64,000 bases of DNA from Tubulanus polymorphus (taxonomy: Eukaryota; Animalia; Nemertea). The notes beneath the pieces are model-generated. The model saw only the letters and a list, made by a program, of their open reading frames with translations, had not been told where the DNA came from and searched no databases. Positions 12,548-60,930 of the stretch are shown piece after piece. The DNA lies in NCBI RefSeq assembly GCF_964204645.1, contig NC_134033.1, forward strand, positions 3,058,131-3,122,130. Direction: 5' to 3'. How positions within the stretch are numbered: position 1 is the stretch's first letter; every line of letters starts with the position of its first letter. The position numbers and the translations under genes were made by a program.

Positions 12548-13075
12548 GGTTAGTGTTGGTTTTCCGAGTGAGCACCGAACAAGTCCTTACCCGCCACAAT
12601 CAGATATCCACGCGCTTCACTTAGCTTCAACTCAGTTATTATATTGACTGTAGAGTGTGAATCGTAAAAACATGTTGACGAAATAGTTTACAGAGACGCA
12701 GAATATTTTGAGGTAAAGATAGAAAATGTTATCGAATATTATCACAAACTGAACGCAGTTCGGGAGCGACAGTAAATATTTTTAGAGAAATAATTGCACA
12801 TGATTATAGACACGATATATTAAAACACGTCTAAATTTAGAAACCGCGGTAATTATTGCGAAACCGAGCGCAGGTGAAAGTAACAGAAATACGAGACTGG
12901 CGCCAGTTTGATGGGAGATCTTTTTACAAAATAATTGGACTCGGTCATTTCGTCAACATCAATTCTGACATTCTGACAACTCGTCATTACTTTGCAGCGA
13001 CTCTTATGAGAAATATCGCGCAAACTTGGAAATAGTTAGAAATGTGTTTGTTTTGAAGCGTGAATTGTGTTCAAT

Positions 13076-16000: not shown

Positions 16001-19000
16001 GACTAATGTATTCAAATATGAATTAGAATAGGATGATTTTTAAAGATTATGATATGTTTCATTTTGTTCACGAAACAGAATGATGGTTATTACACGTGGA
16101 CTGACGGTAAACCATTGAGCTACACAGAGTGGTATAAACCTGTTATTAATGAAACGATACCAGAAGTTATTCGAGGATTGATACCTCCGCTAAGAAAACA
16201 GCCGATAAATGACGTCAATATGCCGTGTTCGGCGATGATACTGAATAATCCACGAGGATCAGCGAACTGGGTTCGATTCCCGTGTCAAATCGAGGAGACG
16301 CATACGACATTCATTTGTGAATCTGAGAGAATCGACTTCAAAAACAAACACAATTCAACGATAAACGATGCGAACAATTCAACAAATACAGACTTAAATA
16401 AAACCATAGATCAAATGATTCCCGATAATACTCTGATTAATTCAACCTGTCCAAGAGATTGGGTAACTATTTCCGGACAATGTTATCAAATACTAACCGA
16501 CTGGAAAAACAATCGTGGTTTGAATATTCGGAGTGCTAGAGAAATGTGTCACAGCATCCGCGCCGAAATAGTAAGAAACAACTTAAATATAGAAAGTGAT
16601 ATGAACAATTTGATCAACAAATTTCAATATCGCCATCAATATGGCGCTATACTGACAATGGACCGCGACGCATTTAAAGTTATCAAACCACTGGTGACCA
16701 GAAATGAAATTACTTATATTCAATCGGTTAAATGGTTATTGAAACCTTTCGATACAAAAGATAAAGTGCATTCCGTGTTGTGTAACTATAATGTAACTGG
16801 TGAAGAGTTAGCTTCTATAAGCGGTTGTAAATCGTGGCAGTTTGAATGTAACGATCAAAGATGTATCAGCGACCATCGCGTATGTGATACCAGACACGAC
16901 TGTCAACACGGTGAAGATGAACTCGATTGTACGGATATCAATTTACACAGTAAGTTCCGCTGTAACGATGGACAGGTTATATCGATTAGCGGTTTCTGTG
17001 ACTTTATTAGAGATTGCGTCGATGGCTCGGATGAGAACTCGTGCTATCATCCACCGTGTTTATCTACGCAATATCGCTGTTCCAATCACCAATGCATCGA
17101 TAGTTATAAACGATGTGACGGACTAGCCAACTGTGAAGACGGTTCCGATGAGATCGGATGCACTGCCGAAATTTGTCAGGGGTTCTCGTGCGCGGACGGT
17201 AAATGTATTAGTTCTCAGTTGTACCGGGATGGTGTCGTGGATTGTAGCGGAAGTCTCGAAGAAGACGAATTAGTCACTAATATTACAGTGAATCCCGAGG
17301 TTTACTGTAATAATGACAATCACTGTACGACTCGTTTCACAGATCTGTGCAAGGAATCGGATGAACAAAGATGTTCGTTCTATTCTCCTCGCTGTTATTC
17401 CCGATACGAAAGGTGTATTTTAGAAAGGATGCCGATTGGTTTTCCGGTATGTAGAAATCTTGAACATATACTCGCGTGTAATGACTTCGAATGCGCGGCT
17501 GGTACTGTAAAATGTCCGGCATCTTACTGTATACCGATCAGACACGTTTGTGACGGTCGATCCGATTGTCCTAATTCTGAAGATGAACGAAACTGCGAGA
17601 CTTGGTCGTGTCCGGGAATGTTTAAATGTGGCCAGGAAAACCGATGTATTCCGCAATCTGAAGTTTGCGACGGAGTCGTAAATTGTAAACATAACTCGGA
17701 TGACGAGTCATTCTGTAAGGTCACGTGTCCTGAGCGTTGTAATTGCCGGGGTCATTTCATCGATTGTGAAAATGCTCTATTATCAGATATTACTGGTCGG
17801 TTTATAGAATCAACTCGGGTTTTGATTTTGTCGAATAACCGAGTCGTATTTAACGAGTCGACGTTCAACTCTTTCATTTATCTTCGTTTTCTCGATATTT
17901 CGGACAATAATTTGTCTTACATCGTTCCAAACGCGTTTTCTAATCTAAATAATCTATACGCATTAGACCTTACACACAACCGCTTAACATCATTATCTGC
18001 TAATACATTCGCAGGTTTGATCGGTTTAAAACAACTATTTCTTATCGGAAATCCGCTGCAACATTTAGAAGACGGTAGTTTCCGAGGTCTGGCGTCACTG
18101 ATTGTTTTCGATCTTCACCGACTTTCTATATCGGTTCTCGGTGAAAATGTATTTAAAGGTTTATCCGCAATACAGTCGTTAAATATCAGCAGTAACAGAA
18201 TTCGTTATATTTCTAGCTATGCTTTTTCTGGACTGACTAAACTAGAAATTCTAGACCTCGTCAACAATTCCGAAGTAATATTTGTAAAAAGAAACGTTCT
18301 TGGCGATCTTACATCATTGAAATACCTCGCTTCGGATGCTTACAAATTTTGCTGCATGGCACCGAATGTTGACCGATGTCTTCCCGAAGCTGATCAATTT
18401 TCGACCTGCTCTGACCTGATGGGTAACGCTGTACTGAGGGCCATCATCTGGATGATCGCATCTTTCAGTTTTCTCGCTAACAGTATCGTTATTTTATTTC
18501 GCGTTCAAGCTTTGCGGATGGAATCCTCCGGAACACGTAACACATCTTCAGATGTCCTCATCATAAATATTGCCGGTTGTGATTTTCTGATGTCGGTCTA
18601 TTTGTTTTTGATCGCAGGAGCTGACCACGCGTTCAAAGGCGTTTATTATCTGAATTCTGAAACCTGGACGGATAGCTCATTATGTCGTCTCGCCGGGGTT
18701 ATTGTCACCGTTTCGTGCGAAGGTTCCTTAACTTTTCTCTTAATTCTAACGCGTCAGAGATATTCAAATATCGTCAACCCATTTTCTAGAAGTCCGATTA
18801 TAACTCCGAAATACGTTATCGGTATTTGCTGCATTTGTTGGCTCGTTATAAGCACGGTTTCTATTCTACCGCTGTCATCGTCGTCTTACTTCGGAGACAA
18901 TTTTTACGGTACAACTGGAGTTTGTTTGCCTATGAATTTACTGACGATCGACGTCAATGGCTGGCACTATTCATTCGCTATTTTTGCCTTGTTCAATGTG

Positions 19001-19330
19001 GCCATATTGGCTACGATAATGACGACGTACGCTCAGATGTATAGACTCGTATCTGGGAGTAGGTCGGGTTCGGGTAGAGCCGATCCTACCGAACTGGTTT
19101 TAGCTCGAAGGAGTTTAGTAATCAATCTGTGTAATCTATTTTGCTGGCTACCGATAATAATCGTTCAGTTTTGCGCCGTATTTTCGGTCGAGATACCGAA
19201 CCAGGTGGCCGCTTGGCTGGCCGTTCTATTTTTACCGATCAACTCGTCTCTGAATCCGCTTCTTTATACAATACTGACGATCGACATGAAATCAATTAGA
19301 ACGAGATATAAACGTCAACAAAAGAAGTAG
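13076..19330 (+). pseudogene. GRL101-like CUB/CTLD/LDLa/LRR GPCR, copy B: exons 13076-14296, 14641-15996, 16079-19330; one in-frame TAA at 14929-14931
   Basis: GT..AG phase-0 introns (GTAAGT 14297, TTTCAG 14640; GTAAGA 15997, AAACAG 16078) join the listed ORFs in frame to 1942 codons. The TAA stands where C and E have TAT (Tyr). It may be a null allele or a base error. Confidence 0.82.
16079..19330 (+). CDS. Copy B exon 3, uninterrupted: CTLD end, second CTLD-like domain, ~7 LDLa, LRRs, 7TM with distinct C-tail RTRYKRQQKK
   Basis: 1083 open codons colinear with exon 3 of copy E. Confidence 0.8.
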   Translation, partial: NDGYYTWTDGKPLSYTEWYKPVINETIPEVIRGLIPPLRKQPINDVNMPCSAMILNNPRGSANWVRFPCQIEETHTTFICESERIDFKNKHNSTINDANNSTNTDLNKTIDQMIPDNTLINSTCPRDWVTISGQCYQILTDWKNNRGLNIRSAREMCHSIRAEIVRNNLNIESDMNNLINKFQYRHQYGAILTMDRDAFKVIKPLVTRNEITYIQSVKWLLKPFDTKDKVHSVLCNYNVTGEELASISGCKSWQFECNDQRCISDHRVCDTRHDCQHGEDELDCTDINLHSKFRCNDGQVISISGFCDFIRDCVDGSDENSCYHPPCLSTQYRCSNHQCIDSYKRCDGLANCEDGSDEIGCTAEICQGFSCADGKCISSQLYRDGVVDCSGSLEEDELVTNITVNPEVYCNNDNHCTTRFTDLCKESDEQRCSFYSPRCYSRYERCILERMPIGFPVCRNLEHILACNDFECAAGTVKCPASYCIPIRHVCDGRSDCPNSEDERNCETWSCPGMFKCGQENRCIPQSEVCDGVVNCKHNSDDESFCKVTCPERCNCRGHFIDCENALLSDITGRFIESTRVLILSNNRVVFNESTFNSFIYLRFLDISDNNLSYIVPNAFSNLNNLYALDLTHNRLTSLSANTFAGLIGLKQLFLIGNPLQHLEDGSFRGLASLIVFDLHRLSISVLGENVFKGLSAIQSLNISSNRIRYISSYAFSGLTKLEILDLVNNSEVIFVKRNVLGDLTSLKYLASDAYKFCCMAPNVDRCLPEADQFSTCSDLMGNAVLRAIIWMIASFSFLANSIVILFRVQALRMESSGTRNTSSDVLIINIAGCDFLMSVYLFLIAGADHAFKGVYYLNSETWTDSSLCRLAGVIVTVSCEGSLTFLLILTRQRYSNIVNPFSRSPIITPKYVIGICCICWLVISTVSILPLSSSSYFGDNFYGTTGVCLPMNLLTIDVNGWHYSFAIFALFNVAILATIMTTYAQMYRLVSGSRSGSGRADPTELVLARRSLVINLCNLFCWLPIIIVQFCAVFSVEIPNQVAAWLAVLFLPINSSLNPLLYTILTIDMKSIRTRYKRQQKK

Positions 19331-23734: not shown

Positions 23735-26700
23735 ATGCCGCGAATGAAAGCGTTGTTCGTAGTTTTACTGATCGCTTGCGGAGACTGTATATTTACGCGG
23801 GCTGATCGCGCAAACTCTGTCCAGGAATCCGCGTCTGTTACAGTCAGTTCATCTTGTAACAACACTCAATACTCCGTCGATTCTACGTCTGGTTACATCG
23901 TTTCACCGAACTATCCGTCGTTAGTGCGCGGTGTCGATTGTCGTTGGTTCGTCAACAGCTCTTTACCGGGAAGTTTTCTCGTTCAAGTTTACTACGACAT
24001 CGAGCCGTCGATATTCTGTAACGAAAACTATCTTGTCGTCGGTGAGTCCGACAACAAACTCTGCGCTACCGGAAGAAAACAACTAGATATCCGCAGTAAC
24101 GATTTGATTTCGTTGTTGTTTAGGAGTAACGTCGATGGAGCGCGAGGTAGTCGGGTTTATATCATATATCGTTTTGAAGAACAGAGTCGCTTGAAGATCT
24201 TACATACATGTTCAAAACATGCAGTTAACAAAATACCAACTGAAACAGGTTATGAATTTATGATTTCTGTCTGGCGATGTAAATTGTTGTTAGAATGGAT
24301 CGGGATGCCAGACGGGTTTGCAATGAATTTAACGTTTATACAGATAGATTTCAGATTATATCCAGGTGAGGATCCGATGAAAACTCGTCCTCAAATTTAC
24401 GACGGATGGAACAGCACCAATGAACCTATAGCTCTTATACGAGAACAAACCGGACATCCACCTTCATCGTTTTATACTAAAACTAATAAAGCACGTATTG
24501 AATTCATTTCAACTAGATCTTGGTTTAAGTCGCAGTTACTCGTGCAAGTTTACAAAATATCAGATTGGAACATCTATAACCCGTTAATTCAAGTCTATGG
24601 TAAATCAGGACTGCTCACTACAATTGATGGAATACCACATATAGTAACTCAGTCTAAACACTTATACTGCTGGTCTATCACAGTCGATGTTCTGCAGTAC
24701 GTCGTCTTCAACTGGACACGTGATCTCGTCTCGTCACCAGGTGTCGTTGGTGTATATAAACAGGAAGGGTTACGTATTGTGAGAACTGATATTTTACTCA
24801 GTTTTAACCATCTTAAATCTCTGAGTGTAAAATCAGACGGATTTCTCGTGATTCTGTGCGTTTTAACGACATCGGATTATTCGAGATCGAATTTGAAAAT
24901 AGAATTTGAAGTGAAATCAATCACAATATCAGACATCTACGTCAACAAACCATGGATAGAGGTAAGACTGTTAAAGTGATTAATGTGATTTAGTTTTTTT
25001 TATAATAGATTGTTTGTAATGATCATTGATTTTTATGAAAATTTTGGCAATTTCGACCAATCAACAATACAGGGAAACTTTGAATGATCATGTTATTTGC
25101 TACATTAATTGTCGATATATTCGAACACACATGTAAATCAGTTTGTATGATAAGGAAAATCTATGATTTCAATTAATAACATTTCATCAAAGACACGATG
25201 TAGTGAAATTCGATCAAGTCATTCATTGAATTTCTTAAAGCATAATTTGTTTAAAAAATCAAATTTCGAATAACATCGATTTCTATAAATTCAAAAGGAG
25301 AATTATATATGGGCGAATTTGAGTTTAACTGCATCACTTAATAATCAGAATAATCAATATGTTATGTATTTCAGGTTAATAAGTCTAACTCATTGCACCA
25401 TTACAACATGTTCCCGAATTCAAAGAATACATTGTATCGTGTGAATACATTACAACTAAACTGGAAAGTGAACATCTATGAAAAACGGTTGAAACTAACA
25501 GTGCTATCAGAAAACTGTGATCGAGCTGGTTTTTATATATTTGATGGTAGTAATTTCACAGCTAGACGCTATGGTCCGTATTGTCCGGGTTCATACTCCG
25601 GTCGATCTGTCGTCAGCCTGATTACATCAGGTGGACCGGTTACTGTAGTAGCATACGCTTATTACTATAACAATCAGTTAACAGTTGGTAGCTCATATTT
25701 TAAATTTGCTCCTACTGATTGTGATGGTTATGTTCTACAGGAAGAAGAACGTCAGATCAATATGACGTCACACTGTCTCGTGATTACACCTGAAAATCGA
25801 CGCCTTCGCTTGAAAAATATTCACATATTATCAGAACACGAATATCAAATTGACCGATGTCAGATCACGTTGCCGCCACTAGAGTGTAATCGTTATCTGA
25901 GTTTGAGTAATCGGTTTCTTAATAATAGTCTCACCTTAAACACTGTTAAGTTCATAGAAAATGAGTTTGGATTTTGGGGGTATCGGCTAATAGTTAAACT
26001 ACGTCGTTAATGTTTAGGAGTGAAGGAAGTTGACGTATTCGATATACTTAACCTTGAGGAAACTAATGATGAATGTGGACTCGTGCAGTCACCGAACTAC
26101 CCGAGTTGGGCAGGACGTACATCAGAATCTAAATATTATACATTTGAAAACCCGATACAACAGAATATATTTCAATATTACAGATTTATTGTCAAATTTA
26201 TTGGATCGGTTTCATGTAAAGCAAACAATCAAAAAGCAAATGATCCAATAATATTGAACCAGTTTATTCATTACAAGTCATTCCTACATGGAAAAACTAT
26301 TAGAACCCAACATGATACTAAGATATGTGAAAATAACGCGGTTCGTGGACTTATATTTTATAGTTTAACAGATAATACTCTGCGTTTTGAAGTAAAGAAT
26401 AATATCCCCACCTTTCAAATACAATACACTTTACACGAGTCGTTACCGATTAAACATTTCGATGATTTCTACTGTAAACAAGGATTTCTGGATTCCGGAA
26501 TTTCCTGCATCAAATTCACCAGAGATGAACGTCTGAATTGGGAGAACGCTGAAATATACTGTAGACAGAAGTACGTGGGACATCTACTCAGTATCAACTC
26601 AGAACAGGAAATGATTTCCATCAAAAGATTATTCGCTACACGACTTCTCCGAATAGCGTACACATTAAAAGCGCTCATAATAATGATTGGATTGAAATGG

Positions 26701-29700
26701 AAGGTAAGACTAATGTATACAAAAATGAATTAGAATAGGATGATTTTTAAAGAAATGATATATTTCATTTTCTTCACGAAACAGAATGATGGTTATTACA
26801 CGTGGACTGACGGTAAAAAATTGAGCTACACAGAGTGGTATAAACCGGTTATTAATGAAACGATACCAGAAGTTATTCGAGGATTGATATCTCCGCTAAG
26901 AAAACAACCGATAAATGACGTCAATATGCCGTGTGCGGCGATGATACTAAATAATCCACGAGGATCAGCGAACTGGGTTCGATTCCCGTGTCAAATCGAG
27001 GAGACGCACACGACATTCATTTGTGAATCTGAGAGAATCGACATCAAAAACAAACACAATTCAACGATAAACGACGCGAACGATTCAACAAATACAGACT
27101 TAAATAAAACCTTAGATCAAATGATTCCCGATGTTACTTTAATAAATTCAACCTGTCCAAGAGGTTGGGTAACTAATTCTGGACAATGTTATCAAATACT
27201 AACCGACTGGAAAAACAATCGAGGTTTGAATATTCGGAGTGCCAGAGAAATGTGTCACAGCATCAGCGCCGAAATAGTAAGAATCAACTTAAATATAGAA
27301 AGTGATATGAAAAATTTGATCAACAAATTTCAATATCGACATCAATATGGCGCTATACTGACAATGGACCGCGACGCATTTAAAGTTATCAAACCACTGG
27401 TGACCAGAAATGAAATTACTTATATTCAATCGCTTAAATGGTTATTGAAACCTTTCGATGATACAAAAGATAAAGTGCATTCCGTGTTATGCACCTATAA
27501 TGTAACTGGTGAAGAGTCAGCTTCTGTAAGCGGTTGTAAATCGTGGCAGTTTGAATGTAACGATCAAAGATGTATCAGCGACCATCGCGTATGTGATACC
27601 AGACACGACTGTCAACACGGTGAAGATGAACTCGATTGTACGGATATCAATTTACACAGTCAGTTCCGCTGTAACGATGGACAGGTTATATCGATTAGCG
27701 GTTTCTGTGATTTTATGAGAGATTGCGTCGATGGCTCGGATGAGAACTCGTGCTATCATCCACCGTGTTTATCTACGCAATATCGCTGTTCCAATCAGCA
27801 ATGCATCGATATAGTCATAAGCGATGTGACGGACTAGCCAACTGTAAAGACGGTTCCGATGAGATCGGATGCACTGCCGAAAATTGCCAGGGGTTCTCGT
27901 GCGCGGACGGTGAATGTATTAGTTTTCAGTTGTATCGGGATGGTGTCGTGGATTGTAGCGGAAGTCTCGAAGAAGACGAATTGGTCACTTATATGACGGT
28001 GAATCCCGAGGTTTACTGTAATGATGACAATCAATGTTCGACTCGTTTCACAGATCTGTGTAAGGAATCGGATGAACAAAGATGTTCGTTCAATTCTCCT
28101 CGCTGTTATTCCCGACACGAAAGGTGTATTTTAGAAAGGATGCCGATTGGTTTCCCGGTATGTAGAAATCTTGAACATATACTCGCGTGTAATGACTTCG
28201 AATGCGCGTCTGGTACTGTAAAATGTCCGGCATCTTACTGTATACCGATCAGACACGTTTGTGACGGTCGATCCGATTGTCCTAATTCAGAAGATGAACG
28301 AAACTGTGAGACTTGGTCGTGTCCGGGAATGTTTAAATGTGGCCAGGAAAACCGATGTATTCCGCAATCTGAAGTTTGCGACGGAGTCGTAAATTGTAAA
28401 CATAACTCGGATGACGAGTCATTCTGTCAGGTCACGTGTCCTGAACGTTGTAATTGCCGGGGTCATTTCATCGATTGTGAAAATGCTCTTTTATCAGATA
28501 TTACCGGTCGTTTTATAGAATCAACTCGGGTTTTAATTTTGTCGAATAACCGAGTCGTATTTTACGAGTCGACATTCAACTCTTTCATTTATCTTCGTTT
28601 TCTCGATATTTCGGGCAATAATTTGTCTTACATCGTTCCTAACGCGTTTTCTAATCTAAACAATCTATACACATTAGACCTTACTCACAACCGCATTACA
28701 TCATTATCTGCTAATACATTCGCAGGTTTGATCGGTTTAAAAGAACTATTTCTTATCGGAAATCCGCTGCAACATTTAGAAGACGGTAGTTTCCGAGGTC
28801 TGACGTCACTTACTGTTCTCGATCTCCACGGACTTTCTATATCGGTTCTCGGTGAAAATGTATTTAAAGGTTTATCCGCAATACAGTCGTTAAATATCAG
28901 CAGTAACAGAATACATTACATTTCGAGATTTGCTTTTTCTGGATTGGTTGGACTTGAAATTCTAGATCTCGTCAAAAATGCCGAAGTGATATTTGTAAAA
29001 AGAACGTTCTTGGCGATCTTACATCATTGAAATACCTCGCTTCGGATGCTTACAAATTTTGCTGCATGGCACCGAATGTTGACCGATGTCTTCCCGAAGC
29101 TGATCAATTTTCCACCTGTTCTGACCTGATGGGTAACGCTGTACTGACAGCCATCATCTGGATGATCGCATCTTTCAGTTTTCTCGCAAACAGTTTCGTT
29201 ATTTTATTTCGCGTTCAAGCTTTGCGGATGGAATCCTCCGGAACACGTAACACATCTTCAGATATCCTCATCATAAATATTGCCGGTTGTGATTTTCTGA
29301 TGTCGGTCTATTTGTTTTTGATCGCGGGAGCTGACTACGTGTTCAAAGGCGTTTATTATCTGAGTTCTGAAACCTGGACGGATAGCTCATTTTGTCGTCT
29401 GGCCGGGGTTATTGTCACCGTTTCGTGCGAAGGTTCCTTAACTTTTCTCTTAATTCTAACGCGTCAGAGATATTCAAATATCGTCAACCCATTTTCTAGA
29501 AGTCCGATTATAACTCCGAAATACGTTATCGGTATTTGCTGCATTTGTTGGCTCGTTATAAGCACAGTTTCTATTCTACCGCTGTCATCGTCGTCTTACT
29601 TTGGAGACAATTTTTACGGTACAACCGGAGTTTGTTTGCCTATGAATTTACTGACGATCGACGTCAATGGCTGGCACTATTCATTCGCTATTTTCGCCTT

Positions 29701-30055
29701 GTTTAATGCGGCCATATTGGCTACGATAATGACGACGTACGCTCAGATGTATGGACTCGTATCTGGGAGTAGGTCGGGTTCGGGAAGGGCTGATCCTACC
29801 GAACTGGTTTTAGCTCGAAGGAGTTTAGTAATCAATCTTTGTAATCTATTTTGTTGGCTACCGATAATAATCGTTCAGATTTGCGCCGTATTTTCGGTCG
29901 AGATACCGAACCAGGTGGCCGCTTGGCTGGCCGTTCTATTTTTACCGATCAACTCGTCTCTGAATCCGCTTCTTTATACAATACTAACAATCGATATGAA
30001 ATCTATTCGTGAACGCAATAAACGACGACTAGGGTTGACGACATCCAGTAAATAA
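23735..30055 (+). pseudogene. GRL101-like GPCR, copy C: exons 23735-24961, 25375-26703, 26785-30055; TAA at 26008-26010, +2 frameshift ~27810, -1 frameshift ~29003
   Basis: Same splice sites and phases as B and E. Lesions are seen by direct comparison: CGT CGT TAA vs AAA/GAA; ATCGATATAGT vs ATCGATAGT; AAAAGAACG vs AAAAGAAACG. Confidence 0.88.
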
Positions 30056-32449: not shown

Positions 32450-32986
32450 GGATTGAGTTGTTTCCTCTGCACAGAACAAGACCTTACCGCCACAATCAGA
32501 TATCCATACGATGCGCTTCATCTAGCTTCAACTCAGTTATTATATTGACTGTAGAGTGTGAATTGTCAAAACAGATATTGACGAAGTCTTTTACAGAGAC
32601 GCAGAATATTCTGAAGTAAATATAGAAAATATCATCGAACATTATCAAAAACTGGTTCGGTTATCAAAACGCAGTTCGGGAGCGACAGTAAATATTTTTA
32701 GCGAAATAATCGCACACGATTATAGACACGATATATTGAAGCACGTCTAAATTTAGAAACCGCGGTAATTACAGCGAAACCGAGAACAGATGAAAGTTTT
32801 ACAAATACGAGACTGGCGCCAGTTTGATGGGAGAGTTTTTATACAAAATAATTGGACTCAATTAATTCGTCAACTTTAAACATTTGCGAATTCGTCATTA
32901 CTTTGCAGCCACTCTTATGAGAAATGTCGCGCAAACTTAGAAATAGTTAGAAATGTGTTTGTTTTGAAGCGTGAATTGTGTTCAAT

Positions 32987-33878
32987 ATGCAGCGAATGAA
33001 AGCGTTGTTCGTAGTTTTACTGATCGCTTGCGGAGACTGTATATTTACGCGGGCTGATCGCGCAAACTCTGTCGAGGAAGCCGCGTCTGTTACAGTCAGT
33101 TCATCTTGTAACAACACTCAATACTCCGTCGATTCTACGTCTGGTTACATCGTTTCACCGAACTATCCGTCGTTAGTGCGCGGTGTTGAATGTCGTTGTT
33201 TCGTCAACAGCTCTTTACCGGGAAGTTTTCTCGTTCAAGTTTACTACGACATCGAGCCGTCGATATTCTGTAACGAAAACTACCTTCTAGTCGGTGAGTC
33301 CGGCAACAAACTCTGCGCTAACGGAAGAAAACAACTTGATATCCGCAGTAACGGTTTGATTTCGTTGTTGTTTAGGAGTAACGTCGATGGAGCGCGAGGT
33401 AGTCGGGTTAACATCATATATCGGTTTGAAGAACAGAGTCGCTTGAAAATTGTATATACATGTCACAAGCATGCAGTAAAAGAATTACCAACTCAAACAG
33501 GTTATGAATTCATGATTTCTACCCTCCGATGTAAATTGTTGTTAGAATGGATCGGGATGCCAGACGGGTTTGCAATGAATTTAACGTTTATACAGATAGA
33601 TTTCAGATTAAGACCAGGTGAGGATCCGATGAAAACTCGTCCTCAAATTTCCGACGGATGGAACAGCACCAGTGAACCTATAGCTCTTATACGAGAACAA
33701 ACCGGACATCCGCCTTCATCGTTTTATACTAAAACTAACAAAGCACGTATTGAAATTGAAAGTAGTTTGAAGTCGAAGCTACTTTGGCAAGTTTACAAAA
33801 TATCAGATTGGAACATCTCTAACCCGTTAATTCAAGTATATAATAAATCAGGACTGCTCACTACAATTGATGGAATAC
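32987..33878 (+). pseudogene. GRL101-like GPCR, copy D: truncated exon 1 (signal peptide and CUB-like domains); remainder of gene absent
   Basis: Colinear with exon 1 of B, C and E up to GATGGAATAC (33878), then LTR-like sequence; no downstream exons found before copy E. Confidence 0.9.
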
Positions 33879-34436
33879 TATTGGGGTGATAAATTAGAAG
33901 TTTGCATAGAGGGAGGGAAGCCAGAGTTCAGAGCAGTGGCTGAAGTTAGTAAACAAACTACGTAGATGCTTACGTCGCACACAAGACACTGAATAGAAGA
34001 TAGGTGAAAGTGACGTGAGTATCTGCGTATGGTTGCTGGTTATAGCGGCAGCCTTGAGCTCTGGTATGGCTAGGAAGTAAACAAGTATAATAAACTCGTG
34101 ACGTATAACATATGTAGAAGTATACGTCACGAGTAACATGAAATAAGATAAAAAGGGAGGGTCAGCACAGTAAGGGGGAGAGAGATGCGAGAGTGGCGGA
34201 GAAGCCTAAAAATACGAGCTGTAGGAAGGAATAAGAATTGTGCGGGAAAATAAAGAAAGAACGTAGACCCACGAGAAGAGTTGTTATTATTCCGGAGTCA
34301 GAGGGATATCACTTATCGGATTAATCGGAACCAACAACGACAACACGAGGGGAGAACGCAACGTGGCCCCCACAACAATTGGTTGAGAAATTCAACCCCG
34401 CAACATTGTTGGAGAACCGAAAGCAACTCCACAACA
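33879..34436 (+). mobile_element. Solo-LTR-like element (TATT...CACAACA) truncating copy D
   Basis: Abrupt homology break; imperfect terminal inverted ends TATTGGGG/CCACAACA; TATA-like ATAAAAAGGG followed by AATAAA; 3' sub-repeats like those in 58755-59564; no TSD. Confidence 0.6.
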
Positions 34437-34498
34437 GTTCCAAGACAAACTTAATTCTATAGCCAATCTAATAATTTAAGACCAGTGTTAAGGTTTAA

Positions 34499-34881
34499 CC
34501 CTTTTCTTTATTGAGGAAATGGCTTGATTTTTGGATATAACTTAGGAAATATACCATTTTGTGTGATTTGTTTCTTTATTTGACATTTAGATATACTTTT
34601 GCCAAAAAAATATTGTATTTTCTTCATGAAGTTTAAAAATTTTTATGAGGTGTGATTTGTCATTATTTTTGGGGTAATCATATATATGGAATATGTTATT
34701 CTGCATTATCTGATAGCTGTGAAAGTTACCTTTCATTTGGTGTAAAGATTATCTGTCTATCTTCATACTTTAAAAAGTTATGATGATTTTAGTAGTATCC
34801 TAGCTCGTTGTTTAATTGCATCGGCCATATACCTTGGGCACAAAAGACCTTTTGAGGGAAAAACGGTTGGGCACCAAAGGG
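34499..34881. mobile_element. Possible piggyBac-type non-autonomous element
   Basis: TTAA-CCCTTT at left and AAAGGG-TTAT at right; only the terminal hexamers match. Confidence 0.3.
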
Positions 34882-35034
34882 TTATGACCACTTTTGGTCT
34901 GAAGTCCTGACTACGGAACCGGTCTCTTGGGCCCATAAAATTAACCAGAAATCCCTCGTTGGTTTTATCAGGGAAGTGTAATGAGACTACCCTGGTTTTA
35001 TAGATCGATGATGTTTATTTCGTTTTTGTTGAAG

Positions 35035-35974
35035 GTGGTTTCGATATCGCGATGCAGCTTCCGTCGGGCTGGATCCCGAATTCATGGAAAATGGTGCCGT
35101 GTCCTGTTCGCGGTAACATACAGTACCGATTCACCGAAAAAAACAAATTCTGGACGCAATTAACATTTCACAATTACAGGTATGGAAATAGTTCTTCCGA
35201 GGGATGCACGTAGAAGCATTTTTGTTTTTAGTTTCTTTGATGATGGAGTTTTAGGAGTAACCCCGAAGCAGTTAGAAAATAGACTTTTCTTCATATAACT
35301 GTGGGTTTTATTTTTTACGTAGAAGCATATTCAAAGAAAGAAGATTTTTACAACAAAAGTTTTGGGGCGTTCCGGGATCAGTTGCGCATCGTACCTTCAG
35401 TACAAGTGTTCCTAAATCTTGAGACTAGCCTTAAGTTATTGCATTGGTTATAGAACTAAGATGAACTTTATGATAGCGAATTTTAATGGTAATCGGGATA
35501 TTGTGGGAGTGGATGTGTGTACTACGTCATTGATATTGGGGCTGGACTGGTTGGCGTTCAATATTGTCGATATATTCAAATTAGAAATAACTTTCTTGAT
35601 CCTTGATAATATATCATTCATAGTATATCATTCGTTGTCGACAATATCGAGCATTATGTGGGTTATTTATCAAGACGTCAATAAACTTTCAAGTCAGTTT
35701 TCTTTTTATCTTTAGAAATGCCATTTACGAAGTGAATTACCGATGGCCGGGAGAAGAGGCGTGGCGAACGACCGAACGCGCCAAATACGGCGCGTTCTTC
35801 ATCATGAAGGACGCACCCGCAGACGGCGTCATCGAGGTCAAGGTCAAGTCCATCTTCAACTACGACGTCGTCGGCCGTACTACCGGCTGGAGTGAGTGTA
35901 GGCGGATCTTACAGGAATCCGTTAGAAATCTACCACCCGATTTAACACAATTTCGATGGAAATACCATTCTTAA
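35035..35974 (+). CDS. Expansin-like (EXLX/YoaJ-type) gene, 3' exons 35035-35179 and 35716-35974: end of DPBB domain plus CBM63-like domain; 5' exons missing (gene fragment)
   Basis: Acceptor TTTTTGTTGAAG; the phase-2 intron GTATGG...CTTTAG joins the exons in frame: GFDIAMQLPSGWIPNSWKMVPCPVRGNIQYRFTEKNKFWTQLTFHNYR|NAIYEVNYRWPGEEAWRTTERAKYGAFFIMKDAPADGVIEVKVKSIFN. This matches the expansin pattern FD(L/I)...G.I...W..V.CP..GN..Y......W......N. Confidence 0.78.
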
Positions 35975-36018
35975 TTACTTCGCCGCCAAATACGACCGAC
36001 CTACGCCCAGCTATCTAA

Positions 36019-36353
36019 AGCCGGGCGTAGGTCGGCCTTGCGACGGCTTGCGACTCACTGCGACGCGACTTACTGCGACCGCCAGCGACGATCGCGTCGC
36101 AACGACCAACCGACCTACGCTACCTTGCGACTGCCAGCGACGGGTTGCGACTGGCAGCAACGCCAGTCGCAATGAGTCGCACATGCTCTACTTTCTGCGA
36201 CGCGACGCGACCATCGCAACCGATCTACGCGCTCTTGCGACTGGAGAGCAACTAGTCGCACACAGTCGCTGACAATCGCGTCGCAACCGACTTGTGCAGC
36301 CACTTGTGACGCAACGCGACGATCTCGTCGCATCGCAAGGTCGACCTACACCC
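36019..36353. mobile_element. GC-rich MITE (Harbinger-like ends) with internal TGCGAC/GTCGCA repeats; second copy 60593-60930
   Basis: TIRs GGGCGTAGGTCGGCCTTGCGA / TCGCAAGGTCGACCTACACCC; an extra TIR copy lies immediately left (35995-36012). Confidence 0.7.
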
Positions 36354-37213
36354 ATCGTTCAAAGATGCGCCTTGCTCTGTTCAGTTCACGTACCGGTATG
36401 TTAATTTTCAATTGATTTTTTTTTGTAGATTTGGATTACCAAGATTTCGGTGTTCAGCAGCCAGCAGTTTGCATTCAAACGACTCCCGATACTGACTGAT
36501 ATCAATAAATACAAATTTACGAAAGACGAGACGTGTATTTCTCATTAGTTCGTCATCGGAGAGGAGAGAGAACATTCCGGGGCCAGTTACTGAGGGGGAT
36601 GTGCACTAAACACCAGACATTGTGCTCGGATGCTGGATTGATGCTAATTCGAACCCCCTATTCGAATTCCTCGGGACGCCTGACTATCCATTGGTTAAAT
36701 GTAATCAACTTTTGAGCAAAAGGCACCCCGGTGTTTTTGGCCTATTAGACCAACCAGAACAGAACGTTCATTGAGAACCGCCGTTGCATGTACCGCCAGG
36801 AACGCGAGCATACTGAGTTCGAACATTGATAATCCATGTATCGAAATACTGATCTTAACTCTGGGAGTCGCACTTAACTAAGAACGTTCGTAAATACTTT
36901 GGTTATCTTTTTTGTTTACGTATATGGCGACTCTCTAGCGCGACATTACGTGCGCAACGCCTCTTTATCCCTAACCTATAGAGCAGAACCAGTGACTCGG
37001 TAGTAGTTGCCAAACAGAGATTCATCGTACACACCCCGTCGAAGATACGTCAATCCCGCTGGCTCGCTATTACTGATGATGGCTGTCAGTAAAAACCGAA
37101 ATGTTGTGGGTTCATTTTCGCGATAGAACGACTTCTTCTCGTTTAACGTGGTCATTTTCGTTTTATCGTGGCAATTTCTCGTTTTAATGTGGTAATTTTG
37201 CACCATTTGTGCT

Positions 37214-37745
37214 AATGAGCTAGGTCTCAGAATGAGCTAGGTCTCAGAATGAGCTAGGTCTGATAATGAGCTAGGTCTGGCGGGAATGAGCTAGGTCTCA
37301 GAATGAGCTAGGTCTGGCGGGAATGAGCTAGGTCTGGGAATGAACTAGGTCTGATAATGAGCTAGGTCTGGCGGGAATGAGCTAGGTCCGATAATGAGCT
37401 AGGTCTGACGGGAATGAGCTAGGTCCGATAATGAGCTTGGTCCGTCGGGAATGAGCTAGGTCTCAGAATGAGCTAGGTCTGAGAATGAACTAGGTCTGAT
37501 AATGAGCTAGGTCTGGCGGGAATGAGCTAGGTCTGGGAATGAGTTAGGTCCGTCGGGAATGAGCTAGGTCTGATAATGAGCTAGGTGTGGTGGGAATGAG
37601 CTAGGTCTGGAATGAGCTAGGTCTGGGAATGAGCTAGGCCTGGGAATGAGCTAGGTCTGGGAATGAGCTAGGTCTGGGAATGATCTAGTTCTGAGAATGA
37701 GCTAGGTCTGATAATGAGCTAGGTCTGGGAATGAGCTAGATCTGG
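37214..37745. repeat. Minisatellite, 18-22-bp unit AATGAGCTAGGTCT(GGG/GAT/GGCGGG)
   Basis: More than 25 tandem units; shorter orthologous array at ~61660-61868. Confidence 0.95.
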
Positions 37746-38059
37746 CATTAGTTAACAGTCTATCGCTAATAGTTCTAAGATTTTTCTTCGAATTCAGCGA
37801 CAATTCATACACAATGGATATTTGATTTTTTGAAATGTAGTGCGAAATGTTCTAAGATATTTCTTGTGCATTCTAATGAAGACTGGTCCACTTCTTATAT
37901 TTGACCGATGTATCCTCCAGCTAATGAATTATTGATACCCACTGGTCAACTTCTTATTCATTGTATTTGAAATGAATATTTTTGAGTTTGTTAGAATAGT
38001 ACAGAGGGTGTGGTACGTATTATCATAGAACCACGCGTTTGTAGTTCAGTGGTATTTTG

Positions 38060-44107: not shown

Positions 44108-44494
44108 ATGTCTGATTTCAAACTACAAACAGATGACGGCTAATTTGCTGATGAAGACGAGTTGCTGTTGTCGCTGATTTCCGATGTTCAATTTCACACA
44201 CATTTATACATTATGAATATTGTGTCTTTTTAGGGTTAAACCGAAACCAGTTCGCTACTACTGACAACTACATGTACACAACTCGTTTGTCGCAACGTCC
44301 TAACTAGTCTGCTGCTGCTGCTGCATTGGGAACCGCATCAATCCACATTTGCTGTTTCGGTATCTTTACATTAAGGTAAGGTAATTATATTAAACTACAC
44401 CCATCCTTACATTTTGCATATTCAATCTTCTTCAATAGCTTGACGATTATCCGATTTGATTTTCAGCCGCCTATATTTGAGTTACAGCAACATC

Positions 44495-44908
44495 TTCAAA
44501 TCTCGATACGCAGACTCAACTCCGACTAAAGCACCATCTCCAAACCTCGAGATGCAGACTCCACTCCATCTCCAAACCTCGAGACGCAGACTCTACTCCG
44601 ACTAAAGCACCATCTCCAAACCTCGAGACGCAGACTCTACTCCGACTAAAGCACCATCTCCAAACCTCGAGACGCAGACTCTACTCCGACTAAAGCACCA
44701 TCTCCAAACCTCGAGACATAGACTCTACTCCGACTAAAGCACCATCTCCAAACCTCGAGACGCAGACTCTACTCCGACTAAAGCACCATCTCCAAACCTC
44801 GAGACGCAGACTCTACTCCGACTAAAGCACCATCTCCAAACCTCGAGACGCAGACTCTACTCCGACTAAAGCACCATCTCCAAACCTCGAGACGCAGACT
44901 CTACTCCG
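44495..44908. repeat. Minisatellite, 44-bp unit CAGACTCTACTCCGACTAAAGCACCATCTCCAAACCTCGAGACG, ~9 copies
   Basis: Period 44 (e.g. 44631 to 44675), nearly perfect copies. Confidence 0.95.
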
Positions 44909-45228
44909 TCATTATTTCGTTTTGCCGCATGTTATAAAGTAACGTAAATAAATAAACGTCCATATACATAAAATGCTCGTGTTACTAAAAATCTCTGTCT
45001 CGGGCTCCGGAAAGGACTCTTCCCCTCACAACTTCATACTCGACACTGCCCCGGAAAGGACTCTTCCGCTTACACAATCAAGGAAAGGACAAAGTCAAAT
45101 AGGAAAGGACAAACGCAAAGTACAAATCAAAGAATTTATTCCAAATTCAAAGTAGGAATTTCTTACAGCTTGTTTGCAAAAGTAAAATTCAAATTTTATT
45201 GAAACATCAATATTTAAATCAACTAAAA

Positions 45229-45290
45229 TGGGATTTGAACCACCAACCATTCGACTAGCAGTCCACACCCTACCCACTACGCTATAGGGA
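45229..45290 (-). pseudogene. tRNA-like/SINE-head remnant
   Basis: Minus strand TAGCGTAGTGG (A box) ... GGTTCAAATCCC (B box); the cloverleaf is incomplete. Confidence 0.45.
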
Positions 45291-45409
45291 CGTACTGGCA
45301 GCACACAGAGGAACTCATATTTATCCATTGCTTAAGCAAATTTTATCAAAAAAATAATGCCATCTACCGGGCGAGACAGGAACTAGTTCCCATTTCAACC
45401 CGGTAGATG

Positions 45410-45580
45410 GTAATAGAGAATGAGACAAGAGTGGGCAGAGACAGAGTAAGAGAGAGGAGGAGAGATGAGAGAGAGTGAGGAGAGATGAGAGTGAAACAGA
45501 ATGAGGAGAGAGTGAGAATGAGACAGAGTGAGGAGAGAGTGAGAATGAGAGAGGATAGAAAGAGATAGAGAGGATAGGAT
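45410..45580. repeat. GA-rich low-complexity repeat
   Basis: Degenerate GAGAGT/GAGAAT/GAGGA run. Confidence 0.85.
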
Positions 45581-50670: not shown

Positions 50671-51229
50671 CTACCGCTGTCATCCCCGTCTTACTTGGTT
50701 GCTGTTGTTTCTTCAAAACAATCTGTACCAAACAAGACCTTACTCACCACAATCAGATATCCACGCACTTCACTTAGCTTCAACTCAGTTATTATATTGA
50801 CTGTAGAGTGTGAATTACCAAAACAGATATTGACGAAGTGTTTTACAGAGACGCAGAATATTTCGAGGTATAGATAGAAAATGTCATAGAATATTATCAC
50901 AAACTGAACGCAGTTCGGGAGCGACAGTAAATGATTTAAAAGAAATAATTGCACATGATTATAAACACGATATATTGAAGCACGTCTAAATTTAGAAACC
51001 GCGGTAATTACAGCGAAACCGAGAACAGATGAAAGTTTCACAAATACGAGACTGGCGCCAAATACGAGACTGGCGGATTTTTTTACAAAATAATTGGACT
51101 CGATCAATTCGTCAACTTCTGACATTCTGACAACTCGTCATTACTTTGCAGCGACTCTTATGAGAAATGTCGCGCAAACTTGGAAATAGTTAGAAATGTG
51201 TTAGTTTTGAAGCGTGAATTGTGTTCAAT

Positions 51230-52456
51230 ATGCAGCGAATGAAAGCGTTGTTCGTAGTTTTACTGATCGCTTGCGGAGACTGTATATTTACGCGGGCTGA
51301 TCGCGCAAACTCTGTCGAGGAAGCCGCGTCAGTTACAGTCAGTTCATCTTGTAACAACACTCAATACTCCGTCGATTCTACGTCTGGTTACATCGTTTCA
51401 CCGAACTATCCGTCGTTAGTGCGCGGTGTTGAATGTCGTTGGTTCGTCAACAGCTCTTTACCGGGAAGTTTTCTCGTTCAAGTTTACTACGACATCGAGC
51501 CGTCGATATTCTGTAACGAAAACTACCTTCTCGTCGGCGAGTCCGACAACAAACTCTGCGCTACCGGAAGAAAACGACTTGATATCCGCAGTAACGGTTT
51601 GATTTCGTTGTTATTTAGGAGTAACGTCGATGGAGCGCGAGGTAGTCGGGTTTACATCATATATCGTTTTGAAGAACAGAGTCGCTTGAAAAACATACAT
51701 ACATGTCACAAACATACAGTAAAAGAATTACCAACTCAAACAGGTTATAAATTCATGATTTCTACCCGGCGATGTAAATTGTTGTTAGAATGGATCGGGA
51801 TGCCAGACGGGTTTGCAATGAATTTAACGTTTTTACAGATAGATTTCAGATTAAGACCAGGTGAGGATCCGATGAAACCTCGTCCTCAAATTTACGACGG
51901 ATGGAACAGCACCAGTGAACCTATAGCTCTTACACGAGAACAAACCGGACATCCGCCTTCATCGTTTTATACTAAAACTAATAAAGCACGTATTGAATTC
52001 ATTTCAAGTAGACAGTCGTTTAAGTCACAGTTACTCGTGCAAGTTTACAAAATATCAGATTGGAACATCTCTAACCCGTTAATTCAATTCTATAATAAAT
52101 CAGGATTGCTCACTACAATTGATGGAATACCACATATAGTAACTCAGTCTAAACACTTATACTGCTGGTCTATCACAGTCGATGTTCTGCAGTACGTCGT
52201 CTTCAACTGGACACGTGATCTCGTCTCGTCACCAGGTGTCGTTGGTGTATATAAACAGGAAGGGTTACGTATTGTGAGAACTGATATTTTACTCAGTTTT
52301 AACCATCTTGAATCCCTGAGGGTAAAATCAGACGGATTTCTCGTCATTCTGTGCGTTTTAACGACATCGGATTTTTTAAGATCGAATTTGAAAATAGAAT
52401 TTGAAGTGAAATCGATGACAATATCAGACGTCTACGTCAACAAGCCACAGATATCG
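51230..52456 (+). CDS. Copy E exon 1: signal peptide and CUB-like domains
   Basis: MQRMKALFVVLLIACGDC leader; CUB motif; donor GTAAGT. Confidence 0.88.
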
Positions 52457-55400
52457 GTAAGTTTATTACAGTGATTTGTAAATTAGGTTCGTGTAATAGA
52501 ATCATTGTAATAATCTATGATTTTGACCAGCGAAACTTTACCGAGAAAATTGGAATAACAATGTTATGTGTGACCCAAATTACAATATATTCGGACGCAC
52601 TTGTTGTTTACGCAGAGTAATTATGATGATTAGTGGAAGAATTTAGATTTAGTTTGGATTACAAGGAGAACTATTATCGATATTTTCAGGTTGTGATTGG
52701 TTTGAAATTGTCGTATTGTAAACGTTCAATGTTGTAATCAATTCTCTTATATTCCAGCATTCACTCACAAACTCAATATCAGATAATCGATTGTTCCCGA
52801 GAACAAAGAATACATTGTATCGTGTAACGACATTACAACTAAACTGGAAAGTGAACATCTATGAAGAACAGTTGAAACTAACAGTGCTATCAGAAAACTG
52901 TGATCGAGCTGGTTTTTATATATTTGATGGTAGTAATTTCACAGCTAGACGCTATGGTCCGTATTGTCCTGATTCATTCTCCGGTCGATCTGTCGTCAGC
53001 CTGATTACATCAGGTGGACCGGTTACTGTAGTAGCATACGCTTATTACTATAACAATCAGTTAACAGTTGGTAGCTCATCTCTTAAATTTGCTCCTACTG
53101 ATTGTGACGGTTATGTTCTACAGGAAGAAGAACGTCACATCAATATGACGTCACATTGTCTCGTGATTACACCTGAAAATCGACGCCTTCGCTTGAAAAA
53201 TATCCATATATTATCAGAACACGAATATCAAATTGATATATGTTTTCTCAAGATGTCATTATTATGTGAACAGTTTCTGAGTTTAAGTAATCGGTTTCTT
53301 AATAACAGTCTCGTATTAAACACTGTAGATTTCACAGGTAATGAGTTTGTATTCTGGCAAGAACCACTAATAGTTAAACTACGTCGTGAATGTCTAGGAG
53401 TGAAAAAAGCGGTTAGTTTTGGATATCTTGGATCCCGTCTTCCAGTTACTACTAAAGATACATGTGGACTCGTGCAGTCACCGAACTACCCGGGTTTGGC
53501 AGTACGTACATCAGAATCTATTTCATATAAATTTGAAAACCCGATACAACAAAATATATTTCAATATTACAGATTTATTGTCAAATTCATTGGATCAATT
53601 TCATGTGAAACAAACAGCGTAGGTGAGAATGATCCAATCATTTTGAAACAATCAATAATTTACGAACGCTTTCACACTCGACATGAAACTAAAATATGTG
53701 AAAATAATGCGGTTCGTGGACTTATATTTTATAGTTTAATAGATAATACTTTGCGTTTTGAAGTAAACAATTTCATTCCGATATTTCAAATACAATACAC
53801 GTTACACGAGTCGTTACCGATTAAACATTTCGATGATTTCTACTGTAAACAAGGATTTCTGGATTCCGGAATTTCTTGCATCAAATTCATCAGAGATGAA
53901 CGTCTGAATTGGGAGAACGCTGAAATATACTGTAGACAGAAGTACGCGGGACATCTACTCAGTATCAACTCAGAACAGGAAATGATTTCCATCAAAAGAT
54001 TATTCGCTACAGAACTTCTCCGATTGGTGTACACATTAAAAGCGCTCATAATGATGATTGGATTGAAATGGCAGGTAAGACTAATGTATACAATTATGAA
54101 TTAGAATATAAAGGTTTTTTAAAAATTACGATATGTTTAATTTTCTTCACGAAACAGGATGATGGTTATTACACGTGGACTGACGGTAAACCATTGAGCT
54201 ACACAGAGTGGTACAAACCTGTTATTAATGAAACGATACCAGAAGTTATTCGAGGATTGATATCTCCGCTAAGAAAACAACCGATAAATGACGTCAATAT
54301 GCCGTGTACGGCGATGATACTGAATAATCCACGAGGATCGGCGAACTGGGTTCGATTCCCGTGTCAAATCGAGGAGACGCACACGACATTCATTTGTGAA
54401 TCCGAGAGAATCGACACCAAAAATGAACACAATTCAACGATAAACGATGCGAACAATTCAACAAATACAGACTTAAATAAAACCATAGATCAAACGATTC
54501 CCGATATTACTTTAATTAATTCAACCTGTCCAAGAGGTTGGGTAACTAATTCTGGACAATGTTTTCAAATACTAACCGACTGGAAAAACAATCGAGGTTT
54601 GAATATTCGGAGTGCTAGAGAAATGTGTCACAGTTTCCGCGCCGAAATAGTAAAAATCACCTCAAATACAGAAAGTGACGTGAAAAACTTGGTCAGCGAA
54701 TTTCAATATCGACATCAATATGGCGCTATACTGACAATGGACCACGACGGGTTTAAAGTTATCAAACCACTGGTGACCAGAGATGAAATTACTTATATTC
54801 AATCAGTGAAATGGTCAGTGACTGCCTTCAATGATACAAAAGATAAAGTGCATTCCGTGTTGTGTACCTATAATGTAACTGCTGAAGAGTTAGCTTCTAT
54901 AAGCGGTTGTAAATCGTGGCAGTTTGAATGTAACGATCAAAGATGTATCAGCGACCATCGCTTATGTGATACCAGACACGACTGTCAACACGGTGAAGAT
55001 GAAGTCGATTGTAGGGATATCAATTTACACAGTCAGTTCCGCTGTAACGATCGACAGGTTATATCGATTAGCGGTTTCTGTGACTTTATGAGAGATTGCG
55101 TCGATGGCTCGGATGAGAACTCGTGCTATCATCCACCGTGTTTATCTACGCAATATCGCTGTTCCAATCACCAATGTATCGATAGTTATAAACGATGTGA
55201 CGGACTAGCCAACTGTAAAGACGGTTCCGATGAGATCGGATGTACTTCCGAACTTTGTCAGGGGTTCTCGTGCGCGGACGGTGAATGTATTAGTTCTCAG
55301 TTGTATCGGGATGGTGTCGTGGATTGTAGCGGAAGTCTCGAAGAAGACGAATTGGTCACTAATATGACAGTGAATCCCGAGGTTTACTGTAATAATGACA

Positions 55401-59564: not shown

Positions 59565-59615
59565 AGACTACCCTGGTTTTATAGATCGATGATGTTTATT
59601 TCGTTTTTGTTGAAG

Positions 59616-60548
59616 GTGGTTTCGATATCGCGATGCAGCTTCCGTCGGGCTGGATCCCGAATTCGTGGAAAATGGTGCCGTGTCCTGTTCGCGGTAACAT
59701 ACAGTACCGATTCACCGAGAAAAACAAATTCTGGACGCAATTAACATTTCACAATTACAGGTATGGAAATAGTTCTTCCGAGGGATGCACGTAGAAGCAT
59801 TTTTGTTTTTAGTTTCTTTGATGATGGAGTTTTAGGAGTAACCCCGAAGCAGTAAGAAAATAGACTTTTCTTCATATAACTGTGCGTTTTATTTTTTACG
59901 TAGAAGCATATTCAAAGAAAGAAGATTTTTACAACAAAAGTTTTGGGGCGTTCCGGGATCAGTTGCGCATCGTACCTTCAGTACAAGTGTTCCTAAATCT
60001 TGAGACTAGCCTTAAGTTATTGTATTGGTTATAGAACTAAGATGACCCTTATGATAGCGAATTTTAATGGTAATCGGGATATTGTGGTAGTGGATGTGTA
60101 AACTACGTCATTGATATTGGGGCTGGACTGGTTGGCGTTCAATATTGTCGAGGATATATTCAAATTAGAACTTTCTTGATCCTTGATATTATATCATTCA
60201 TAGTATATCATTCGTTGTCGAAGATATCGAGCAATATGTGGGTTATTCTTCAAGACGTCAATAAACTTTCATGTCAGTTTTATCTTTAGAAATGCCATTT
60301 ACGAAGTGAATTACCGATGGCCGGGAGAAGAGACGTGGCGAACGACCGAACGCGCTAAATACGGCGCGTTCTTCATCATGAAGGACGTACCCGCAGACGG
60401 CGTCATCGAGGTCAAGGTCAAGTCCATCTTCAACTACGACGTCATCGGCCGTACTACCGGCTGGAGTGAGTGTTGGCGGATCTTACAGGGATCCGTCAGA
60501 AATCTACCGCCCTATTTAACACAATTTCGATGGAAATACCATTCTTAA
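59616..60548 (+). CDS. Expansin-like gene fragment, second copy: exons 59616-59760 and 60290-60548
   Basis: Same splice sites and open frame as 35035-35974. Confidence 0.78.
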
Positions 60549-60592
60549 TTACTACGCTGGCAAATACGACCGACCTACGCCCAGCTATCTAA

Positions 60593-60930
60593 AGCCGGGC
60601 GTAGGTCGGCCTTGCGACGGCTTGCGACTCACTGCGACGACGCGACTTACTGCGACCGCCAGCGACGATCGCGTCGCAACGACCAACCGACCTAAGCTAC
60701 CTTGCGACTGCCAGCGACGGTTTGCGACTGCCATCAACGCCAGTCGCAATGAGTCGCACATGTTCTACTTTCTGCGACGCGACGCGACCATCGCAACCGA
60801 TCAACGTGCTCTTGCGACTGGAGAGCAACTAGTCGCACACAGTCGCTGACAATCGCGTCGCAACCGACTTGTGCAGCCACTTGTGACGCAACGCGACGAT
60901 CTCGTCGCATCGCAAGGTCGACCTACACCC
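60593..60930. mobile_element. GC-rich MITE, second copy
   Basis: Same TIRs as 36019-36353. Confidence 0.7.

Follow-up and report, generated by a model that had tools for sequence, protein, structure and literature searches.

In Bacillus EXLX1, Asp82 is essential to loosening and the D82N exchange inactivates the protein; W125, W126, Y157 and K119 bind cellulose (PMC5072189). Few metazoan expansins (from a tunicate and some bivalves) were recorded in a 2019 survey, in which it was unconfirmed whether they were genes or contamination (bioRxiv 10.1101/637728). Public databases already list expansins with introns for one animal group, the hemichordates, which an earlier note on this DNA had missed. 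Expansins go unmentioned in the main text of the paper on the hemichordate genomes, and a search of an incomplete literature collection found nothing published on the expansins of nemerteans or lophotrochozoans.

We analyzed a stretch of 64,000 nucleotides from the nemertean Tubulanus polymorphus (the window). C9 denotes the contig that carries it; positions on C9 bear this prefix, and window coordinates are given separately. The host is predatory (PMC6410017). GRL101-like receptor genes (LDLa-LRR-7TM) form a tandem array in the window. Near-identical (91-96%) genes lie at 1-1919, 13067-19330, 23735-30055 and 51221-57427, with very large exons encoding CUB-like, C-type lectin-like, LDLa, LRR and 7TM parts. 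The copy at 26740-30055 is broken up into overlapping ORFs, probably through frameshifts.

Expansin exons in the window

Within the array, three exons on the forward strand correspond to exons 8-10 of an intact gene elsewhere on C9, termed the parent below. Exon A (35035-35179; parent exon 8) encodes the last DPBB strand with the Asp82 equivalent, the interdomain linker and the start of CBM63. It follows an AG acceptor, is entered in phase 1 and left in phase 2 at a GT donor, and its protein is 100% identical to that of parent exon 8. A phase-2 GT-AG intron of 536 nt (35180-35715, plus strand) separates it from exon B (35716-35891, plus strand; parent exon 9), which encodes the remaining CBM63 β-sandwich, including the Tyr157 equivalent, and whose last base, 35891, is followed by a GTGAGT donor. 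The next intron (35892-36428, plus strand, phase-1 GT-AG, 537 nt) contains a high-copy repeat. Exon C (36429-36499, plus strand; parent exon 10) is the terminal coding exon and includes the stop codon; an AATAAA lies at 36504-36509, five bases past it. A second truncated copy of exons 8-10 occupies 59616-61077 on the same strand (exons 59616-59760, 60290-60465 and 61007-61077).

Two RefSeq models of sister copies, P0001 and P0007, have junctions identical to those of the window copy and an identical protein C-terminus. Model P0011 reads through to the intron stop. The splice sites and the sister models confirmed what the earlier note had read from the letters, namely two exons in a continuous frame across the phase-2 GT-AG intron 35180-35715. 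Its end at 35974, however, is a read-through stop within the intron 35892-36428, and the third exon and the copy at 59616 had escaped it.

Exon A alone was searched against the PDB. All three matches up to E 10 were expansins, and the best had an E value of 1.1e-3. In the protein library search, RefSeq XP_074658214 (Tubulanus polymorphus, 124 aa) was identical to exon A from the protein's own Met. The spliced RefSeq model P0007 matched NCBIfam expansin_EXLX1 (NF041144; E 4.7e-10, 39 bits) and four expansins in the PDB (best E 2.7e-6). The curated cut-off of NF041144 is 100 bits, and the scores of up to 39 bits are those of pieces; the searches covered single exons and RefSeq proteins. Pfam and NCBIfam gave no matches to exon A or exon B singly, nor did the PDB to exon B singly, and Pfam Expansin_C gave none to the window copy or the parent D2. 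The NF041144 profile found nothing over the whole genome because the exons are short. A word-based homolog search with P0007 returned only Tubulanus polymorphus. Since exon A alone matches only expansins in the PDB and P0007 matches expansins in both NCBIfam and the PDB, the window exons are judged, from their sequence, to be real and not a chance match.

The predicted structure of P0007 had a pLDDT of 82. Its top 18 PDB matches in Foldseek were expansins or group-1/2/3 pollen allergens (TM 0.54-0.63). FN3/Ig folds came from rank 19 on, with E values of 0.02 or worse and TM ≤0.40, and an FN3/Ig-like β-sandwich was rejected on this ranking. Because the fold model was built on an expansin alignment, sequence and fold do not count as two independent lines of evidence. 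NF041144, PDB sequence and Foldseek matches placed a C-terminal CBM63 β-sandwich (D2) in both the window copy and the parent, and exons 8-10 are predicted to fold as a self-contained CBM63 domain. By sequence and modeled fold, we assign the window exons to the microbial-type expansin (EXLX) family. The earlier note's family call was thus borne out; the profile and structure checks that it had proposed returned expansins and no better match to FN3 or another β-sandwich.

The intact parent gene and its predicted function

The genome search for a full-length parent with a signal peptide, which had also been proposed, led to C9:2772348-2778033, about 320 kb from the window copy. This gene has ten exons, 622 codons plus a stop (1869 nt), and nine introns, all GT-AG, with consistent exon phases. 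Exon 1 encodes a hydrophobic leader, by eye a signal peptide. Expansin module 1 (DPBB+CBM63) comes from exons 2-5 and expansin module 2 (DPBB+CBM63) from exons 7-10. Between them, exon 6 encodes a linker of 191 aa that is 63% Pro/Thr/Ser and contains 16 TTEP units. The two modules have three intron positions in common and are 27-64% identical exon by exon; the window intron 35180-35715 corresponds in position to the exon 4/exon 5 intron of module 1. The window exons had been read as the 3' part of a two-domain DPBB+CBM63 expansin. Exons 8-10 are indeed an expansin 3' end, but no gene start lies nearby, and the ten-exon structure indicates that their source is a tandem double expansin rather than a single two-domain protein.

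The parent adjoins the GRL101-like GPCR array, just upstream of it. Its own upstream neighbors are an apparently intronless mitochondrial elongation factor Ts gene (L021:4498-5499, minus strand), about 2 kb away and divergent, and a rhodopsin-type GPCR gene. In the whole genome, exons A and B occur nine times with 95-100% protein identity, and the copy at C9:2776587 is preceded, at a distance of 1.9 kb, by an exon A paralogue (50% identity). Exon 9 of the window copy has Ala at its codons 15 and 33, where the parent has Thr and Val. Parent exons 5 and 7 are single-copy in the genome, which makes the parent the sole full-length expansin detected, with 5' truncation at the eight remaining loci. 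Protein searches found no full-length database protein for the parent, and the tandem-profile search returned hemichordate and microbial proteins without a full-length nemertean one.

Exon 7 has the conserved Cys/Gly pattern of D1. Its atlas neighbors almost all belong to the DPBB clan, with scores <0.9, and its best fold match is an expansin, a weak one (E 0.49). Its best non-self match is the marine protein P0123, with a pairwise E value of 3e-11 and 30% identity. Sequence and fold support, cumulative exon by exon, place a predicted D1 DPBB domain ahead of D2 in the parent.

Functional residues were compared in EXLX1 numbering. In module 2, position 71 (encoded by exon 7, which the parent alone has) and position 82 (exon 8) are both Asp, and the expansin cysteine pattern is retained. 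Module 1 has Asp71 but Asn at 82 (exon 4), and one sister copy of module 2 (C22) has Asn at the Asp82 position. The FDI motif can slide in automatic alignment; P0123 anchors the register of Asp82 because it has the same CP-x-PG-x-x-D-x context, which supported the previous identification of the D1 Asp in FDI as the Asp82 equivalent. At positions 119/125/126/157, module 1 has K, W, W and Y, an intact binding row, and module 2 has T, F, W and Y. The D2 aromatics that had been lined up by eye therefore held for W126 and Y157, yet W125 is changed to Phe and K119 to Thr. Both modules are without about 6-7 residues of the helix after Asp82. The Thr12/Thr14 (T-x-Y) motif of D1 is degenerate in both, and alignments A3 and A4 differ there by a one-residue register.

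The parent is predicted to encode a secreted protein that would bind and loosen polysaccharides without lysing them. Module 1, with Asn82 and with K119, W125, W126 and Y157 intact, would mainly bind, and module 2, with Asp82 and Asp71 retained, would be the loosening-competent unit. The extended, probably O-glycosylated linker would tether the two modules.

It is also possible, although we would not favor it, that the parent retains the expansin fold without loosening; its role would then be that of a mucus or matrix lectin, or of an antimicrobial binding protein. The nemertean sequence sits on a very long branch in our phylogeny (4.4 changes per column), the full functional residue set is in neither module, the T-x-Y motif is degenerate, the post-Asp82 helix is shortened in both modules, the linker is mucin-like, and the host is a predator in which no cellulose is known. 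All of this would fit such a loss, but module 2 retains Asp71, Asp82, W126, Y157 and the cysteine pattern. This alternative is limited to the parent and does not conflict with reading the window copy as a fragment.

Origin and coding status of the truncated copies

Homology between the window copy and the parent begins inside intron 7. Upstream of exon A, the broken 5' exon of a GRL101-like (LDLa-LRR-7TM) receptor gene (32978-33878, plus strand; ORF of 303 aa versus 414-417 aa when intact) is cut by a solo LTR of 558 bp at the duplication junction (33879-34436, plus strand). The 3' part of parent intron 7 follows (34434-35034, plus strand; homology at 34434-34498 and from 34877). The LTR thus has a GPCR exon on its left flank and expansin intron 7 on its right flank, with no target-site duplication, and the left (GPCR) flank is identical in five copies. 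The window locus is not the end of a gene starting nearby. The intron 7 homology is interrupted at 34497-34880 by an insertion of about 380 bp whose ends are short and inverted (TAACCCTTT). This insertion sits inside a high-copy inverted-repeat element of intron 7 that is older; it is present in the LTR-linked copies and absent from the parent. A CUB-expansin fusion ORF was rejected, as the ORF of the GPCR ends at 33889, within the LTR.

The LTR family has at least 40 LTR matches at ≥97% across the genome, often paired about 3.5 kb apart. Four sister copies hold the full element, consisting of a repeat, about 2.9 kb without long ORFs and a second repeat; a purine tract precedes the 3' repeat. 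The LTR is solo in three copies, among them the window copy. The family is a young, dispersed element, apparently non-coding and non-autonomous. The element measures about 4 kb (full element L027:1440-5492), and its repeats start with TA rather than TG. Downstream of the window copy, about 13 kb matches DNA 3' of the parent. Short-unit satellites at 37210-37750 and 44480-45570 (with a 17-bp unit in the parent's copy) travel with each duplicated unit and vary in length. The window copy at 59616 has a separate, later 5' breakpoint at 59565, behind another repeat with the same final eight bases. The copy at C9:4.069 Mb (L030) has an extra insertion of about 1.36 kb in intron 9.

The GPCR/LTR/intron 7 junction without target-site duplication points to LTR-mediated duplication. 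On the simplest account, one copy of the LTR element would have sat within a GPCR exon and a second within intron 7 of the expansin gene on the partner chromosome, and unequal recombination between them would have produced the GPCR-5'/LTR/expansin-3' junction. The GPCR array would then have multiplied the junction, with the element collapsing to a solo LTR in some copies. Recombination involving the partner chromosome would have left the parent intact and LTR-free, as seen. Because the parent has no LTR in this assembly, we infer the LTR-bearing partner allele.

A complete D1 was not found in the window copy; exon 7 occurs at the parent locus alone. A start codon and signal peptide for this copy were not found either, the upstream sequence being the LTR and the broken GPCR exon, and no matching leader exon lies in the window. 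With no start or leader and almost no D1, the window copy cannot be a canonical expansin; without a start, a signal peptide and the DPBB barrel, it most likely makes no working expansin and is probably a passenger fragment. Overall, we consider it likely that the window holds a recent 5'-truncated duplicate of exons 8-10 that arose by LTR-mediated unequal recombination and probably makes no working expansin.

All nine copies retain open frames, splice sites and AATAAA, and they are young, with intron 8 about 2% apart on average. Among variant alleles, 10 were synonymous on 80 sites and 12 were non-synonymous on 304 sites, giving a pN/pS of about 0.32 (p ~0.009; versus intron 8, p ~0.05; 22 variants, copies not independent). 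Amino-acid changes were fewer than expected of dead copies, and some copies may be expressed. RefSeq calls at least three truncated copies protein-coding. One model, XP_074658306, combines exons 8-10 (best match, the copy at C9:3038093) with two phase-1 exons encoding a signal-like peptide; in the genome, the nearest pair of these leader exons, at C9:2994582 and 2995156, precedes that copy by about 43 kb. It could be a real chimeric transcript or a mis-joined model. The small phase-1 signal-like exon pair recurs at C9:2844176, 2994582, 3152692, 3823000 and 3984052, and it adjoins a tRNA-Glu(TTC) gene. Three sequencing runs holding the gene behave as genomic DNA, as their contigs cross introns and splice joints are absent. 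One presumed RNA run gave no match, which is not proof of silence.

Some truncated copies might be working new genes that use an LTR, GPCR or neighboring promoter and a borrowed signal-peptide exon to make a small secreted CBM63-only protein like Phl p 2/3, but we regard this as unlikely. The pN/pS value, the nine copies without a disabling change, the exon join in XP_074658306 and the self-contained CBM63 fold are consistent with it. However, the variants number only 22 and the copies are not independent, gene conversion or inherited parent alleles could yield an equal deficit, and no signal-like exon lies near the window copy. The join in XP_074658306 would cross about 43 kb of GPCR array; given this span and the occurrence of the small exons at five places, a mis-joined model is plausible. 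The fuller scenario is more doubtful still. In it, LTR-mediated duplication would have given rise to a young family of stand-alone CBM63 genes that are expressed and under selection, one or more of them carrying a borrowed signal-peptide exon. Their source would be a highly diverged tandem expansin whose modules divide binding and loosening between them and which a marine microbial lineage would have supplied independently of the hemichordate expansins.

The exons might also be contamination, or an assembly artefact, derived from a microbe or a food organism. In favor, single exons find their top-scoring outside relatives among microbial, environmental or hemichordate proteins, and metazoan expansins were unconfirmed against contamination in bioRxiv 10.1101/637728. 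This reading was rejected on intron structure and genomic context: the nine spliceosomal introns of the parent, the host repeats within introns, the 16.5 Mb contig with animal neighbor genes (mitochondrial EF-Ts, GPCR) and the presence in runs from two samples make such an origin very unlikely, to a degree that we treat as negligible. Contigs of three runs (two samples) hold the parent-only exon 7 together with the duplicated part; in run X1 the depth was about 15 for exon 7 and 166-182 for the duplicated part, which are rough values and not copy numbers. The earlier argument for a genuine animal gene was supported by these data.

Comparison with known expansins

The ten-exon nemertean expansin with canonical domain order and the intron-containing hemichordate genes settle that metazoan expansins can be real. 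The parent is a new, very divergent animal member of a known family, and it offers a direct test of the role of an expansin in a predatory animal without known cellulose. As for the locus in the window, it is most likely a fragment produced by duplication and draws interest mainly as a clear case of LTR-mediated gene-fragment amplification.

The phylogeny does not resolve the origin of the nemertean gene. Exon 7 is closest to a group of marine environmental expansins (P0123, P0129-P0134), and transfer from a marine microbe would be plausible. These proteins have a long D1 insertion before the (W/F)-x-x-(Y/F)AA strand, as in the nemertean, and have the CP-x-PG-x-x-D context in common with it. 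Unlike the nemertean protein, they have an intact helix after Asp82, their D2 is little similar, and P0123 has a single module. The marine group itself is unannotated, carries a distinctive D1 insertion and is mostly missed by Pfam.

The tandem expansins of hemichordates (Ptychodera XP_070533744; Saccoglossus XP_006812919 / APU50764, 'expansin-yoaJ protein-like') are animal and intron-containing and, like the nemertean parent, have a signal peptide, two expansin modules and a low-complexity spacer. They are much closer to bacterial EXLX than the nemertean protein is (NF041144 >330 bits), and none of the four introns of the Ptychodera gene is at a nemertean intron position. Each nemertean module finds its best or near-best match in the other, so the tandem form probably arose twice, separately in the nemertean and in hemichordates. 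The nematode expansin-like proteins are also animal and contain an expansin D1; their domain order is reversed (bioRxiv 10.1101/637728), unlike the canonical order of the nemertean parent.

A protein of exons 8-10 alone would resemble the grass pollen allergens Phl p 2 and Phl p 3, which are stand-alone expansin D2 proteins (TM by target 0.70-0.75). The identity is 11-14%, and the nemertean product is a putative one.

The bacterial and fungal EXLX proteins (Bacillus EXLX1/YoaJ, 2bh0/3d30; Xanthomonas, 9ms4; Streptomyces, 9ms5; Talaromyces, 7wvr; NF041144) are like the nemertean parent in DPBB + CBM63 order and linker motif. The D2 fold is alike (TM ~0.6), Asp82 and Asp71 are found in nemertean module 2, and the D2 aromatic row is comparable. 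In contrast, nemertean identity to them is only 15-22% in structural alignments, below family cut-offs. The nemertean gene further differs in its spliceosomal introns, short post-Asp82 helix, tandem modules and Pro/Thr linker, and the window copy differs in being without most of D1.
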